NCBI GenBank assembly: GCA_025558095.1
Contig: JAIVFI010000018.1
Location: 372,001 to 436,000, forward strand
Reading direction: 5' to 3'
Source of the DNA: Hyaloraphidium curvatum SAG 235-1
Taxonomy: Eukaryota > Fungi > Monoblepharomycota
Length of the DNA: 64,000 nt
Shown here: positions 1 through 7,081 of the stretch, in pieces
Layout of the letters: the number at the start of each line of letters is the position of its first letter
Numbering within the stretch: position 1 is the stretch's first letter
Translations under genes and position numbers: made by a program
Notes under the pieces: model-generated
Databases searched by the model: none
What the model was told of the DNA's origin: nothing
Seen by the model: only the letters and a program-made list of their open reading frames with translations

Positions 1-83
1 GGACGCGTGGCCTTGGGTTAGGCGGGCCATGTGGGCGCGGCGACCCGCACGCCGGCCCCCCAACCCGTGGCCCGCCCGCCACG

Positions 84-3000
84 ATGGGCGTCGGCAAGGG
101 AAGATGGCAGGGTGTTTCTCTGCCGCCGCGGGCCCCGCCGCCGCCGAAGCCCAGGAGGGGCAAGCGGTGGACCATCCCCGAGAAGGGCGAGAAGCCGAGC
201 CTGCTGTGCGCCGCCGTGCTCGCCCTCCTCGGCACCATCAACGCCGCCTCCGCTCTCGCGCTTGCCGTGCACGGCACCTCCAGCCTCCCCACCCCCACCC
301 CGGTTGCCCTCGCCGACCCTGCCCACCACGTCATCGCGCCCCCTCACGTGACGCTGCTCCATGCCGCCTCCATGATGGCGGCCGTCGCGGTCCTGTTCGC
401 TCTGGACGCTGCGATGGACTGGCTGGCTGAGGTGCTCGGGGTGAGCGAGGAGGTCGGCTGGATGGGTGCCGGTGCCCGTTGGGTGGTGTCGGCGGCGCCC
501 GGGGTGCGGGAGTGGGCGAGGAGGAAAATGGGCTGCCGGGCACGCAAGAACGGCAAATTTCCGGTTGCTCGAACCGTCACACGCACCCTTGCCGCTTCGG
601 CCGCCATCATCGCCATCTTGGCCGCGATGAGGCGTGGACTCGGCGGATCCGTGACTTGGTCCAACCTGACCGACGCGGCCATGCTCCTCCCCATCGGCTT
701 CTTCACCGTGACGATGCTCCAGTGGATCCAGGCGGATTTAGCGCCCCGCAAGAGCAAGCAGCTTCGCCTTCTGCGCAGGTGCAGGACCGCCAAGATCCTC
801 AAGCCCTCCGCTGCGTCACCCGGATACGTCAACGTCGCCACCGCAACTGGAGTCGTTTTCGTCACGGCGGTTGCGTACATTCTGTCGTCACCGTGGTTGT
901 CTTCCTTTCCATTCGACGCCGGCATCTCCATCCTCGTCGCCGCAGTCCTCGCCTTTGCCGACAGCCGGAGATGGTGGAGGTCAGACTCCACTGGCCGCTG
1001 GATCTCGAACATCACAATGGCCATCGGCGACTGGGTGTCAGATCCGTGCCTGGTAACCCTTCGCGGCGTGCGCGCCCACGTGAACGAGGCACTGGACCGG
1101 GAGCGCAAGCTACACGGCCTTTCGCTCGCCGCGCCGAGCCGCCATGCCCGCCGGCGCGCGACGCGCACGTCGCGCGGTCTCTCTCGCCCAAGGCTGCTGC
1201 CTCGGGCGCCGCGATGCCGCCTGCTCCTGGCCGTCGCACTGGGAGTGGTCCGCGTGCTCTTGGGCGCGCGGTCGCTGGTCGGTAGCATTCCTGTGCTGGC
1301 AAAGCACCTGCTCGAGCCCATTCTGAACTGGGCTTCGGAGGAGGGGCAGAAGGTCGGCCCGCCGACGGTCCCTGGTGCCTGGATGGACATGGACGAGGCG
1401 GCAAGGCAGCGTCTTGCCACTCTGCTGACCGGTAGGCACATGCACTTGGGTCGATGGCAGGATGGTCTGATCGACGCCGTCGTTGAAGCCAAGGAGATCA
1501 ACTGGTTCGTCCAGTCCGCCGAGGAACAAGGCTCCTATCACGATCGGCTCGCACGTGCCTTTACCTCCCCCGCCTTCGCGGCTCAGGACAGGCGCCTGGA
1601 GCACTGGCTCACTGGTTCGTCTGTTCCGCTTCCGGACACGCGCTTTCTGATCAAATGCCCACAGTGGACGAGATCCTCGCCGCGAAGCTGTGCCGCGCGT
1701 GGTTCCGCGCCCCGTGGGACCCTGACGCGCAAGCGTGGATGTCTGTTCCTGCGGCGGCCCAGAGCCGCTCGACCCGGCGGCGGCGGCACAGGCGGTTCAG
1801 GCTCCTCCTCGGCCCCGTACTCGCACTCGCGACCAAGACAGCTTGGCTCGCCAACGAGGCTTTGCTGAGCATAGAGACGCAGACTGCGGAGCTCAACGGC
1901 GAGAATCCTGTGCTTGGAACGGACGACCTCCCGCCGCTGTGCCGCAAGACCCGCGAGGTCATCTTGGCCGAAATTGCATTCCTGAGCGCTCCCAGGTAGG
2001 CCACGGTGCTGTTGGCCCTTGGGGCGTCGGTCCTCATTCGTACCATTTCGAAAGGCACGTGCCCGGCTCCGAGGGCACGGCCAAGGGCAAGGCCAAGGCC
2101 AAGGCACCTCCTGGAGGAGCGGACGGAGACGGGTTGGAGCCGCCGCCGAGCAAGGTCGGCAAGGTGTGCGGAAGATGCGGGGGGGCCGACCATGAACGGG
2201 CCAGCAACAGGCTGTGTCCGTATCACAAGCCAACCATCAAGGCGACGGCGAAGAAGGACGTCGAGCAGGTGACGGGCAAGACGGTTCCGTCGACCATCAA
2301 GCTCCCCCTTAAGGGCCTCTGCACCTCGTCACCCGCGTCTTTCGCATCTGTTCACGACACGCTCGCGCTGGCCTACACGCCCGTGGCAATCGCCGCCGCG
2401 CTGCTGCTCAACGAGGGCGTGGCGGCCTGGGTCACCGATAACCGCGTGCTGCCCCAGCTCAACCAGTCGCTGTTGCGCCGGGTCTTTTTCCTTTGCGCCT
2501 CCGGGGAGCTACGCATTCAGGCGAGCGATTCCTTACAGGGACAGGAAGAGTTCTTGCGGTCCTTAGAGCGCATCTGGCTGGGAGACGGTGGCACGCCGGG
2601 TCTTCGGGCGAGCTACCCGGCGCGCTTTGCGGCGTTTCGGGCTCCAGGGGCTCGGGGGAGCGCGTCGCCGAACCGCATGATCGACCAGTACTTCAGCTCC
2701 GAGTTCGACAACATCTACAACGCGACGTTTAAGGACTATCAAGTCAACATCGAGGTGCACCTGGAAAGCGCGGCGAACCGCAACTTCAAGAAGCTCGCCG
2801 AGCTCCGGTTCGACAAGCTTCCCTGGTGGAACGCGGTGGTGGACGGCGACCCGGAGAAGGAGCTCCCTGCCGAGCGCAAGTCGGCGATCTTTGCAAGCCT
2901 CCTTTCCGCCAGCAAGAGCCGCCGCCGGCCCCTCAAAATCTTCAGCCGCACCGCCGCGGCCGGGGATCATTACCTGACGGAGCAGGACGTGGAGCTGGCT

Positions 3001-5185
3001 GTTGCCGCTGGCCAGTCTCTGACATACGGCTGGAAGACGCCGTCGATGCAGCATCACCGAAGCGCTGTGCTGGGGCCACACTTTCTGGAGGCGCTGCTGC
3101 GTGATGTCCGCGCCGGGCGCGACCTCCACGTTTCCATGCGAGGGGAATTTGCGTCGTGGTTCGAGGAGGAGTTCGAGACGATTATGGAGACCGTGGTGCT
3201 CAACAAGGTGGCGAGGGCGCAGCTGGCCAAAGACCTCGTGGCCCGCATCACGAGCACCGGTGCGCACAAGTTCAGCGCGCGGCACATAGCGTTGGGGGAA
3301 GGTCCGGCCGCCATCCCCTGGGATACATTGCAGGCCGCTGCGAACACCGGAAATGGCCTTCTCCTGGACCGTCGGGCGGGCAAGACGGCGGTCGTGCGGG
3401 ACAGGCTGCAGCACGCCACGATTGTCCAGCTCGTTACCTTCCTCCAGGAGGCATGGGGACGGCAAAACGATATCGAAAGGAACGGGATGCAAGGCGGCGT
3501 GAAGGACTGGAACACGCGGCTACGGTTTCTGCACAGGTCGAACTGCCTGATCGGTGCTCTCTATGACATTACCGTGCCTGCCGGGCCCTTTGATCCGCAG
3601 TGGCAGCCGCCCTTGCCGCCCACCTCGGCCCTCCTGCCCTACTTCAACTACCAGACCAAGCACGTCAAGGTCGCTACATTCGATGCGCTGCTGGAGGTTG
3701 TGAAACGCCACAAGCGGATGTTTCCCGCCGAGCACGCAGCCGTCATGGACGACCACTTTCCGTTTGGCGAGGACTTCGACGAGAGGGACGATTACCACCG
3801 GCGGCGTCTGTGGGCTGCGGTCTACGATACGGACAGCCTGCTACAACGCGAGGTCCGAGGCGGCTTCAGGGACAACTACGTTGGGGACAAGACGCGCGCC
3901 TTCGCCTTCGCCGTGTCCTCCAATGGTGTCGAGGCTTCAGTGCTTTTCAACAAGGCGGTGCCTAACGACGACTTCGAGCCGGAGGGCGAAGCTCGCGAGG
4001 CCGGTGGTGCGGATGACGAGGCCAGGATCGTCCGGGAGGCCGCTGCCGCTGCCTTCCACGCGGGTCTACGCAGGGGCATGGAGCGGGCGGTGCAGTTCGA
4101 GGACCAGGCGAGGCGCGGCGAGATCAAGCTGCACGTCCAGGGTCTGGACCCCGGACCGGGCGGCTTCACGCTGGCTCGGCGCACGGAGGACGGCGAGGCT
4201 CGGAGCAAGGTCTTCTTTTACTCGTTCAAGCAGTATCACTACGAGTCTGGCGTGACAAAGCGCAAACGGCAGCAGGAAGCCCTGACAAAGACGATGCACG
4301 TGACCACGGCCGCCGGGCCAGTCTCGATCCAGAACATCATCAACGCCATCCCCGCGAGCACGATCACCGCCGTCGACGCCATCCACCGCCGCAACATGTA
4401 CATCCTCACGCATCTCGATACGCTGGTCCGCTTCTACAGCGAGTTCCGGGACGAGCGTTTCCAGAACTACCGCGGCAAACAGATCGCCCTGGAACGCATG
4501 GCGCAGGAGCTGCTCGCGATGGAGCATGAGAGCAAGACCGGTTCGCCGAAAACCACGGAGACCAAGGCGGCGCGGCGGAACCGGAAGGGCTGGCGCCGGT
4601 GGTTCAGGAGCAAGAGGAGGAAGCGCGCCGGCGGACATCGCTTGCCGGAGCGCTACGTGATCGTCTGGGGCAACGCCAAGGTCGGCAGCATGAGCTGGAT
4701 CAAGAAGCAGATGCGCGGCCCGTTCAAGAAGCTCATCGCGCTGCTGGAGGCACGGTCTGACGTCGTCATAGTCATGGAGGACGAGTACGGCACGAGCAAG
4801 TGCTGCCACTCGTGCGACCAGTGGAGCCTGGACACGCGCAAGTGCCGGCAGATGCCCAAGGAGCTGGAGCCGACGTACCGGCCCCCGGTGGTGGCGGAAG
4901 GGGAGCAGGGGGAGGAGCGCAAGTGGCACGTACCGATGGTCATCCCGACCAAAAAACCCTGGTATGTGCGCTGGTGAGTGTGCTGGCTTCTGATCCTTTT
5001 TCTCGCTCTGACATCCGCAAAGGTGCTTCAACCCCGCCTGCCCCGTCGACCACATCCACCGCGACGTGAACGCGGCGCTGAACATGCTCCGCCTTTACGA
5101 GTGGCGCCTCTGGCAGTGGCGCACGGCGCCGGGGATCGACGTGGAACAGACGGGGCGGCCCCCGGGCCTGAGGCGCTTGTCGTAG
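84..5185 (+). CDS. Fanzor (eukaryotic TnpB/Cas12-like RNA-guided endonuclease), predicted exons 84-1614, 1665-1995, 2055-4973, 5023-5185, 1647 aa, with hydrophobic N-terminal extension
   Basis: RuvC-I GLDPG (D at 4147-4149), VIVWGNA, rearranged RuvC-II EDEYGTSK followed by CCHSC (E at 4783-4785). After removing a 49-nt GTGAGT..CTGAC..AAG intron (4974-5022) the frame continues WCFNPAC..HRDVNAALNM (RuvC-III D at 5063-5065), stop at 5183-5185. Zn-knuckle CGRCGGADHERASNRLCPYH near 2165-2226. Introns 1615-1664 and 1996-2054 join the upstream ORFs in frame. The Fanzor identity is strong and the 5' exon linkage is less certain. Confidence 0.88.
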
Positions 5186-5390
5186 AACTGCACCCATCAT
5201 CTGGGTAACCTTCAACTCTTCAGAACTCCCATCGACCGACGGCGGCTCGCGAGGGCTGGCATACCCTAGGACCGAGCTCGGTGAACGATGGGATCTCATT
5301 GGCCGCTTACAGTCGGGATTCTCGAGGACCTCAGCATTCCGATTTGTAGTTGGAAGCGGACTATCAAGAATCGCGATCGCGCTTGTCCAG
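5186..5390 (+). ncRNA. Candidate Fanzor omegaRNA scaffold plus 3' guide (boundaries uncertain)
   Basis: Lies directly after the Fanzor stop. Small hairpin 5192-5206. Nested stem TCCCATCG/CGATGGGA, ACCGA/TCGGT, GCTCG/CGAGC, AGGG/CCCT (5227-5293). Second hairpin CCGCTT/AAGCGG with an inner TACAGTCGG/CCGATTTGTA stem (5303-5359). The position matches known Fanzor loci. Confidence 0.55.
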
Positions 5391-5422
5391 CCGGGGGGGT
5401 GTGCACGGGACACGTCAACACC

Positions 5423-7081
5423 ATGGCAACACGGTCCTTCGCGGTTGTCGGCGGCGGCATCTCAGGGCTCTCCGTTGCGTGGCACCTCGCGCACCTCGCG
5501 CCCGATGCGCGGATCGCTGTGGTCGAGGCCGCGCCGCGGTTCGGCGGCTGGCTGCACACGGTGCGCGTGGCTGCGGGGCGCGGCCGCGGCGTGCTGTTCG
5601 AGCTCGGGCCGCGCACGCTGCGGCCGGCGGGGCCGCCCGGCGTCGCCACGCTGCGGCTCGTGCACGCGCTCGGCATCGCGGGCGACGTGGTCGCCGTGCC
5701 AAAGACCGCGCCCGCCGCGCGCAACCGCTTCGTGTTCCTCGACGGCCGGCTGGAGCGCGTCGGCGCCCCGCTGTTCCGCCGCTCCGCGCTCGACATTGCA
5801 AAGGGGCTGCTGGCCGGGCACAGCCCGGCGCCCGCGGCCGGCCTGCCCGCCGGCTTCGACGACGAGACCATATGGGCCTTTTTCGCGCGCCGCTTCGGGC
5901 CGCGGATCGCAGACGACCTCGCGACATCCATGGTCCACGGCATCTACAGCGGCGACGCGAGGAAGCTCAGCCTGCGGTCGACGTTCCGCTCGATCTTTGA
6001 GGTCGACCGGAGGATGGCCCGGGCCGCTCGGAGCGCCTCGCGGGGCAGGCTTCTGAAGGCCTGGGCGCTGAGCCGCAAGGACAACGCGGCATCGGAGGAT
6101 CCCATGGTGGCCCTGGAGAGCAGGGTCGTGGGACCCGGGGTCACGCTGCCCTGGCGGACTTCTGCCGCTGCCGAGTTTGCGGAGCGCATCGGCAAGGAGG
6201 CCAGCATCTACACTTTCAAGGAAGGGATCTCGCACCTTTCCGATGCGATGGTGAACGACCTGCGGACGCGATTCCCCAACGTCGAGCTCCGGTCGGGCAC
6301 CGACGTCGTCTCGATAAGGCTCGCTCCGGACGGGTCGGTGGCCCTCGAAACGCGCACCGGACCGAACGGGCGATCCGTTTCTGAACGCTTCACCCACGTG
6401 ACGGGCGCGGTGGCCTCGCCGGCTCTGGCCGCAATGCTGCCGGGCGAGAACGGGCCGGAAAGGGAGCTGCGCGAGCTCCTTTCGTCGATCGTCTTTTCGA
6501 CCGTCGCGGTCGTGAACCTCGCCTACGTTGGATCGCCCGAAGAGCTGCTGCCGGTGCAGGGCTTCGGGTTCCTGGTTCCCATCAGGAGCATGCTCGGCGG
6601 CGGGGCGGAACCGCCGGGTGGTAGCCTGCCCGCCCTCGGCGTCATCTTCGACTCGTGCGCGGTCGAGGCGCAGGACGACGGGGTCGCCGTCCACGGCAAG
6701 CCGGTGACCCGCCTGACCGTCATGTTGGGCGGCCACGCGTTCGAGAGCCTGTTTGGCGACCCGGACCGCGCGGACCGGGGGCAAATCCTCGAACGGGCCC
6801 GCGAGGTGGTCCGCCGGTCGCTGTTTGGCGGGTCCGAGCCGGAGCTGGCCGCATCCATGGTCTCGGTGCAGAAGGACTGCATCCCGCAGTACTACCTGGG
6901 GCACGACCACAAGCTGGCGCGGATGCGGGAGCTGCTTGGCCCGGGTGGCGAATGGGGCGGCAAGCTGTCGGTTTGCCACGCGAGCTACACGGGCGTTTCG
7001 ATGAACGACTGCGTGCTCAATGGCCGCATCCTTGCGACGCGCTTGGCGGTAGGCGATTCCGATTTGTTTCCTGGCGTGTAA
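5423..7081 (+). CDS. HEM14: Protoporphyrinogen oxidase
   Basis: N-terminal FAD-binding VVGGGISGL, FELGPRTLRP, HGIYSGD, GFGFLVP, CIPQYYLGH, GVSMNDCV. Appears intronless. Confidence 0.93.
   Translation: MATRSFAVVGGGISGLSVAWHLAHLAPDARIAVVEAAPRFGGWLHTVRVAAGRGRGVLFELGPRTLRPAGPPGVATLRLVHALGIAGDVVAVPKTAPAARNRFVFLDGRLERVGAPLFRRSALDIAKGLLAGHSPAPAAGLPAGFDDETIWAFFARRFGPRIADDLATSMVHGIYSGDARKLSLRSTFRSIFEVDRRMARAARSASRGRLLKAWALSRKDNAASEDPMVALESRVVGPGVTLPWRTSAAAEFAERIGKEASIYTFKEGISHLSDAMVNDLRTRFPNVELRSGTDVVSIRLAPDGSVALETRTGPNGRSVSERFTHVTGAVASPALAAMLPGENGPERELRELLSSIVFSTVAVVNLAYVGSPEELLPVQGFGFLVPIRSMLGGGAEPPGGSLPALGVIFDSCAVEAQDDGVAVHGKPVTRLTVMLGGHAFESLFGDPDRADRGQILERAREVVRRSLFGGSEPELAASMVSVQKDCIPQYYLGHDHKLARMRELLGPGGEWGGKLSVCHASYTGVSMNDCVLNGRILATRLAVGDSDLFPGV

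Follow-up and report, generated by a model that had tools for sequence, protein, structure and literature searches.

A transposon-borne gene joining a predicted membrane domain to a Fanzor-like nuclease in the fungus Hyaloraphidium curvatum

Results

Positions 372001-436000 of contig 18 (C18) in the 31.9-Mb assembly of the monoblepharid fungus Hyaloraphidium curvatum, a stretch of 64,000 nucleotides hereafter called the window, open with most of a transposable element (family A) that carries one long gene (window positions 84-5185, forward strand). In a single spliced frame, this gene joins a region of six predicted membrane helices to a Fanzor-like nuclease region, an undescribed architecture that is supported at the DNA and RNA level. 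An earlier note on this DNA had proposed a Fanzor fused to a membrane domain and encoded by three exons, and the present analysis follows up that proposal. All coordinates are window positions, negative values lie before the window start, and the four copies of the element are named after their contigs (C18 for the copy in the window, C12, C20 and C2).

The gene is spliced from five exons

The five exons of the gene (Table 1) splice into one frame of 4,887 nt, comprising 1,628 codons and a stop, with sense codons at every junction. The DNA near the gene is G+C-rich (63-74%) and contains long open reading frames (ORFs) in many frames and on both strands. An open frame is therefore, by itself, of little significance in this region. 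Splice evidence came from the short contigs of one public RNA run (X1; on the reference L032, coordinates minus 650 give window coordinates). These contigs show spliced joints for all four introns (1431/1489, 1614/1665, 1995/2055 and 4973/5023). The joint at 1614/1665 holds a base found at 1665 in the C12 copy only. At the 1995/2055 joint, 14 inserted letters correspond to QVPRS, with which exon 3 begins in the C12 protein (P0001), and the net loss of 77 nt is the sum of the 59-nt intron and an 18-nt deletion in C12.

Both introns put forward in the earlier note (1615-1664 and 1996-2054) are real, having GT..AG ends and CTGAT or CTCAT branch motifs in all four copies and being spliced in X1. 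The joined frame described there also stands, as the fusion is in frame and spliced in RNA. Its size has to be reduced from 1,647 aa and 4,944 nt to the values above, a 57-nt intron having been counted in, and its three exons become five with the addition of introns 1432-1488 and 4974-5022, both spliced in X1. Intron 1432-1488 is invisible by eye because in the window copy it keeps the frame and contains no stop; the public model KAI9033157.1 also splices it. In C2 and C20 the frame is present only with 1432-1488 removed, as the public C2 model does. One 1-nt indel, at 1480, falls within this intron and another within 4974-5022. The position of the last intron is common to two environmental relatives of the nuclease (L046 and L047, see below). 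We also observed a minor alternative acceptor 5 nt downstream of the first intron's acceptor (1432-1493, a 62-nt skip) that would shift the frame; its contig depth was 4, compared with ~1,067.

As expected of the fusion proposed earlier, paralogues retain it: the full frame and all GT..AG sites are kept in three of the four copies (C18, C12 and C2), and C20 has an 8-nt deletion in exon 3. Exon lengths vary among copies by multiples of 3 (1348/1357/1366 nt for exon 1a, where the indels are 9 nt and 9 nt; 331/334 nt for exon 2; 2919/2898/2916 nt for exon 3), and three introns vary by 1 nt. Indels of 1, 2, 12 and 13 nt distinguish the copies upstream of the ATG at 84, and we therefore place the conserved start at this codon. 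In the nuclease frame of C18 there is no ATG before residue 208 of exon 3, past the zinc knuckle, which agrees with the earlier observation that this frame needs upstream exons to start. The ATG at 1655, from which a soluble isoform had been suggested, is indeed found in every copy and shares the frame of exon 2; the isoform itself is weighed in the Discussion. Transcription of the first exon is seen in a 331-nt RNA contig identical to the C18 copy across a C18-specific block of exon 1a, and a 175-nt contig from a freshwater poly(A) metatranscriptome is likewise identical to exon 1a.

Table 1. Features of the membrane-Fanzor gene and its element in the window.
Feature	Position	Strand	Remarks
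Family A element, part in window	1..5363	+	Bounded by terminal inverted repeats; four copies with sharp homology ends
Exon 1a	84..1431	+	Conserved ATG; 449-aa membrane region; open in four copies
Six predicted membrane helices	201..959	+	aa 40-62, 89-120, 168-182, 198-215, 249-267, 280-292 (Kyte-Doolittle)
Seventh hydrophobic helix, doubtful membrane span	1218..1301	+	aa 379-406; three K/R inside
Intron	1432..1488	+	57 nt, GTAGGC..CTGAT..AG; X1 joint and public model P0002; 58 nt in C2 and C20
Exon 1b (linker)	1489..1614	+	X1 joints, public model P0002
Intron 1 of the earlier note	1615..1664	+	50 nt, phase 1; X1 joint 1614/1665; conserved ATG at 1655 in frame with exon 2
Exon 2 (linker, Arg-rich stretch, internal Met 1739)	1665..1995	+	GC3 0.82; included in public model P0002
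Intron 2 of the earlier note	1996..2054	+	59 nt, phase 2; X1 joint; TAG at 1997-1999 if retained
Exon 3 (Fanzor-like core)	2055..4973	+	Zinc knuckle 2167-2226; RuvC-I Asp 4147-4149; RuvC-II Glu 4783-4785, then TSK and CxxC
Last intron	4974..5022	+	49 nt, phase 2; splits zinc ribbon/RuvC-III; spliced in a 932-nt X1 contig
Exon 4	5023..5185	+	Second CxxC pair; RDVNAALN, RuvC-III Asp 5063-5065; stop 5183-5185
3' untranslated region to right end	5186..5363	+	Candidate guide-RNA scaffold; right inverted repeat 5337-5363

The N-terminal exons carry a coding signal

The G+C content at third codon positions (GC3) is 0.82 in exon 1a, 0.78 in exon 1b and 0.82 in exon 2, compared with 0.84 in nuclease exon 3, and the codon usage of exon 1a matches that of exon 3 in the proposed frame only. 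The pairwise ratio of nonsynonymous to synonymous substitution rates (dN/dS), which the earlier note had singled out as informative for the membrane exon, was 0.48-0.67 for exon 1a versus about 1 in the two other frames, and 0.19-0.28 for exon 3. Across the three N-terminal exons, variable sites are distributed 60/48/83 over the three codon positions, a third-position excess (p = 0.007). The N-terminal frame (449 + 41 + 109 codons) is uninterrupted in each of the four copies, although about 190 sites vary. Constraint on these exons is weak, with 9-15% of sites varying, near the 14% seen in introns.

Exon 1a encodes a predicted six-helix membrane domain

The six to seven hydrophobic stretches noticed earlier in the first exon were recovered by Kyte-Doolittle analysis as six clear segments and one doubtful one, all in the proposed frame, with none in the other five frames. 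The six helices have mean Kyte-Doolittle values of 1.6-2.6 and no K or R within them. The flanking segments contain 10/0/11/2/9/0/19 K+R residues in order, counts that are nearly identical in all four copies. This positive-inside alternation predicts an N-in/C-in topology with the downstream parts in the cytosol or nucleoplasm, and hence a nuclease on the cytosolic or nuclear side. The helices are better conserved than the loops (8-10% versus 15% differences to C2 and C20). The domain thus combines hydrophobic helices with charge alternation and belongs to no known membrane-protein family among those searched. Homology searches were run exon by exon, with single exons as queries, and a metagenome scan with the membrane domain found no relatives.

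The C-terminal part resembles a diverged Fanzor1 nuclease

Exon 3 starts with a Lys/Ala-rich stretch followed by a C-x2-C-x4-H-x7-C knuckle of the CCHC type. The RuvC motifs read GLDPG and EDEYGTSK, then CxxC, in exon 3 and continue into exon 4 (Table 1), leaving the D-E-D triad intact. The RuvC-I Asp and RuvC-II Glu are invariant among family A, the sister element family B (see below), two environmental fragments and a Fanzor-like gene on contig C14; the RuvC-III motif was read in family A and in family B. The profile PF07282 (TNB/zinc ribbon) matches exon 3 at positions 16-43 (E = 0.022, 15.3 bits) and exon 4 at positions 49-60 (E = 0.1), collinear across the last intron and both below threshold (cut-off 26.3 bits), the zinc-ribbon domain being split by a ~45-aa insertion and the intron.

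Profile-profile alignment with hhalign connected the nuclease to the Fanzor-like ORF on C14 (96% probability, E = 2.4e-9) and to a PF07282-positive ORF on C2 (E = 4e-4, 35% probability) with the catalytic Glu and the E..TSK..CxxC motif aligned. ESM features pointed to fungal and giant-virus Fanzor-type clusters, with a score of 0.95 to a Mucoromycota Cas12f1-like TNB cluster, and the NCBIfam profile guided_TnpB gave a match (E = 0.38) in family B only. From these motifs and matches, the nuclease appears to be a Fanzor1-like, highly diverged member of the TnpB superfamily. It may be RNA-guided.

Word-based protein searches returned only proteins of the same species and two cut environmental fragments, and a metagenome scan with the nuclease found no relatives. 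The environmental relatives L046 and L047 (ENA metagenome contigs) have nucleases 48% and 36% identical to that of family A and a similar right-end motif; both contigs begin inside the nuclease exon, so they are uninformative on conservation of the fusion. In PDB searches the REC region matched the DNA-binding domain of Chd1 (E = 0.022), a hit that was set aside as being at chance level. Fanzor-like genes are numerous in the H. curvatum genome, in which we counted at least 17 further Cas12f1-like TNB matches (contigs 2, 5, 14 and others), including one repeat with identical scores at 10 loci and 199-aa open frames.

The gene lies in a non-autonomous transposon

The family A element is 6.9 kb long (-1520 to 5363), with its left end 1,520 nt before the window (C18:370480, equal to L021:6480). 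Its four copies are 94-96% identical to one another, with sharp homology borders. The ends are 27-nt inverted repeats that match at 23 of 27 positions. A TA stands at both borders in C18, C20 and C2, the left end of C12 being truncated; it is either a duplication or part of the repeat. The element contains no DDE transposase gene and is therefore non-autonomous. It has inverted ends and TA borders in common with Tc1/mariner-like transposons and differs from them in lacking the DDE transposase. The membrane-Fanzor gene is its only long conserved frame, whereas in the left 1.6 kb no frame is conserved and the indel lengths are not multiples of 3. Over -1520 to 5363 the identity between copies is mosaic, blocks of 82-90% alternating with blocks of 99-100% and the nearest partner switching from block to block, which suggests gene conversion among the copies.

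A non-coding module of 640 nt lies upstream of the gene (-684 to -43; L021:7316-7957) and is 73-74% identical between families A and B, whose nucleases share just 33-35% identity. We found it at 10 or more loci, among them elements on C3, C5 and C37 with unrelated cargo. Indel lengths within the module are not multiples of 3, RNAalifold gave few covarying pairs (7 of 146, covariation term -1.06), and a search of Rfam across the upstream 1.8 kb gave no match. The summed RNA contig depth over the module is 2-4 times that over the gene body, and the module is probably a shared promoter or leader. Its candidacy as the Fanzor guide RNA was rejected, as the elements on C3 and C5 that have it carry unrelated cargo. 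In one X1 contig, Illumina adapter letters stand right before L032:501 (about -149 to -144), so many fragments begin at this position, a possible 5' end of the mRNA.

Family B, the sister element, measures 5.7 kb and has three copies (contigs C7, C15 and C21; L025:4570-8780, L026 and L027), of which the one on C21 is apparently broken. It has its ends in common with family A, with a similar right-end motif, and likewise the upstream module, the zinc knuckle, the same last-intron position and a nuclease alignable over its whole length. Unlike family A, it lacks a membrane exon, and the first exon found in that place is RGG-rich, in frame and ~235 aa long (starting MPPRKR); a 53-nt intron separates it from the main frame. 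Because family B has this exon at the same place, N-terminal extension exons are normal for these genes, and the membrane domain of family A takes the place of a nuclear-type tail.

At the other end of the family A gene, the 178-nt stretch between the stop codon and the element's right terminus varies at 3 of 175 sites (1.7%) among the four copies, compared with 30 of 215 (14%) in introns, and the right-end motif recurs in family B and the environmental relatives. Guide RNAs of the Fanzor family are encoded between the stop codon and the right end of the element, and this region is a candidate guide-RNA scaffold. Its folding energy was no better than that of shuffled sequence (z = 0.39).

The right end of the element also lies ~59 nt upstream of the ATG (5423) of a gene for a protoporphyrinogen-oxidase-like flavoprotein (Amino_oxidase, E = 3e-27; window 5363-5425), so the element sits in the promoter or leader of that gene.

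Discussion

Comparison with known Fanzors and membrane-tethered factors

The family A gene shares with Fanzor1 nucleases (e.g. SpuFz1 of Spizellomyces punctatus) the order of RuvC-I, RuvC-II and RuvC-III, a putative zinc ribbon between RuvC-II and RuvC-III, introns, a location in a eukaryotic DNA transposon with terminal inverted repeats and TA flanks, and strong conservation of the non-coding DNA that lies between stop codon and right end. It differs from them in being so diverged that Pfam matches fall short of the threshold and sequence searches retrieve no solved Fanzor, in a nuclease part that alone is about 1,020 aa long and has the zinc-ribbon insertion, and in an N-terminus of ~600 aa that opens with six predicted membrane helices rather than a short disordered nuclear-localisation tail. 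To our knowledge, the characterised TnpB, Fanzor and Cas12 nucleases are all soluble, and the eukaryotic members are thought to have adapted mainly through introns and nuclear-localisation signals. The suggestion that the architecture is undescribed was borne out, in that full-text literature searches combining Fanzor with transmembrane, membrane, fused or Hyaloraphidium found no membrane-fused Fanzor. At the N-terminus, published Fanzor surveys describe disordered nuclear-localisation regions only (PMC10530073, PMC10711439).

A possible parallel for the layout lies outside nucleases. SREBP, ATF6 and yeast Spt23/Mga2 are membrane-tethered nuclear factors that are released by proteolysis, and yeast Heh1/Heh2 are inner-nuclear-membrane proteins with a nuclear-localisation signal and a long linker. 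By analogy, the family A protein would resemble them in having an anchor, a long flexible basic linker and, facing the cytosol or nucleus, a large domain directed at DNA. It is unlike them in having no sequence relationship to them, no known cleavage site or protease, an N-terminal anchor of six helices, and a transposon nuclease as cargo.

A proposed single, membrane-anchored chain

We lean towards reading 84-5185 as the gene of a single-chain, membrane-anchored Fanzor-like protein of 1,628 aa from a non-autonomous transposon, an interpretation that we consider probable while holding it with considerable reserve. Such a protein would begin with a basic N-terminal tail and the six helices. Next would come a basic juxtamembrane segment that holds one more hydrophobic helix, then a linker of ~190 aa that is under little constraint and includes an Arg-rich stretch, and finally the CCHC-type zinc knuckle and the diverged Fanzor1-like RuvC nuclease. 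The first helix would act as a signal anchor and lead to insertion into the membrane system of the endoplasmic reticulum (ER) and nuclear envelope. Facing the cytosol or nucleoplasm, the nuclease could then act on DNA at the nuclear periphery or after release, and it may serve the element in the way proposed for other Fanzor and TnpB nucleases, with a guide RNA from the conserved 3' end. The earlier note had offered, as speculative roles, a nuclease anchored at the ER or nuclear envelope and released by proteolysis, or a nucleic-acid sensor coupled to a membrane effector.

Several observations weigh against this interpretation. No contig joins the membrane exon to the nuclease exon, so that continuity is a chain of separate junctions, some of them from C12. 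The public models split the locus at intron 2, and retention of that intron gives a stop codon: the annotation consists of two adjacent genes, one of 608 aa (KAI9033157.1, ending at the TAG in unspliced intron 2) and one of 981-987 aa (KAI9033158.1, 987 aa, ending in the last intron). Constraint is lower in the membrane region (dN/dS about 0.5) than elsewhere in the gene, and this region has no homologue beyond its own paralogues in Pfam, NCBIfam, a HMMER search against 1.84 billion representative proteins or the ESM Atlas. If the seventh helix (aa 379-406) spans the membrane, the nuclease would be luminal, where there is no DNA. At ~130 kDa, the cytosolic domain is also big for a protein that has to reach the inner nuclear membrane. 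Fanzor membership is assigned from motifs and weak profile matches, and PDB sequence searches found no Fanzor. AlphaFold2 models were unusable, with a mean predicted local distance difference test score of 35.8 for the nuclease exon (4 sequences) and 41.1 for the C-terminal 412 aa (7 sequences). Nor was any small RNA or Rfam match found that could represent a guide RNA.

Alternative readings of the locus

The split in the public annotation would be explained if one transcription unit gave two products, namely a 608-aa membrane protein from transcripts that retain intron 2 and a soluble Fanzor of about 1,100 aa, the full fusion being a minor or unproductive isoform. The soluble form would have an Arg-rich, probably nuclear-targeting N-terminus and start at ATG 1655, through retention of intron 1 or an internal transcription start, or at Met 1739. 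Every copy has both of these codons in frame with the nuclease, C12 and C2 offer a further in-frame ATG within intron 2, and characterised Fanzors have N-terminal disordered nuclear-localisation regions (PMC10530073). The nuclease exon also has a somewhat greater summed contig depth than exon 1, although depth of this kind is unsuited to ranking. The adjacent models KAI9033157.1 and KAI9033158.1 do split exactly at intron 2; however, the public nuclease models also lack the RuvC-III exon, and in C12 and C2 they start at an ATG within intron 2 that is in frame with exon 3 but absent from C18 and C20. For these reasons they look like ORF calls on a badly assembling, fragmented repeat rather than evidence for two genes. 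Moreover, intron 2 is seen spliced in RNA, an mRNA retaining it would have a premature stop far upstream of the last intron, and no transcript start within the gene was seen, though contigs cannot reveal one. We regard the two-product account as unlikely, while giving it real weight.

The fusion could also be functionless, the N-terminal region being a decaying passenger (for example a captured or de novo frame that now acts mainly as a long leader) in a family that is drifting to inactivity. Such decay would fit a membrane region that is an orphan and, with the linker, the most variable part of the element (9-15% of sites, against 14% in introns), as well as the frameshift already present in the nuclease exon of C20 and the absence of a transposase inside the element. 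It is harder to reconcile with a frame of 449 + 41 + 109 codons that stays open in all four copies through so many variable sites, with exon indels that are all multiples of 3, with dN/dS below 1 in the proposed frame only, and with helices that are better conserved than loops and a charge alternation found in every copy; we judge a passenger to be improbable. Lastly, G+C content of 63-74% and long ORFs in several frames and on both strands might raise the suspicion of a chance open frame with coincidental hydrophobic stretches and introns. We give this idea next to no credence and have rejected it, since it is refuted by splicing confirmed in RNA, by GC3 and codon usage specific to the proposed frame, by indels that keep the frame and by the confinement of hydrophobic segments to one of six frames.

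Meaning for Fanzor biology

The membrane-anchored, single-chain reading has a practical consequence for the annotation, which is corrected at four loci where the gene had been split in two and left without its catalytic RuvC-III exon. Families A and B also form a natural pair ready for experimental comparison. More tentatively, and with doubt outweighing confidence, we propose that family A encodes a natural membrane-anchored RNA-guided nuclease, active at the ER or inner nuclear membrane or released from there. In this proposal the N-terminal exon would serve as a targeting module that can be exchanged (six helices in family A, an RGG-rich tail in family B), and confinement may be an evolved control layer of eukaryotic OMEGA systems. 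If this is true, TnpB/Fanzor nucleases can be confined to a membrane surface, which would raise the questions of how a transposon nuclease reaches chromatin or is kept off it, whether it is released by cleavage, and what part the nuclear periphery may play in homing.

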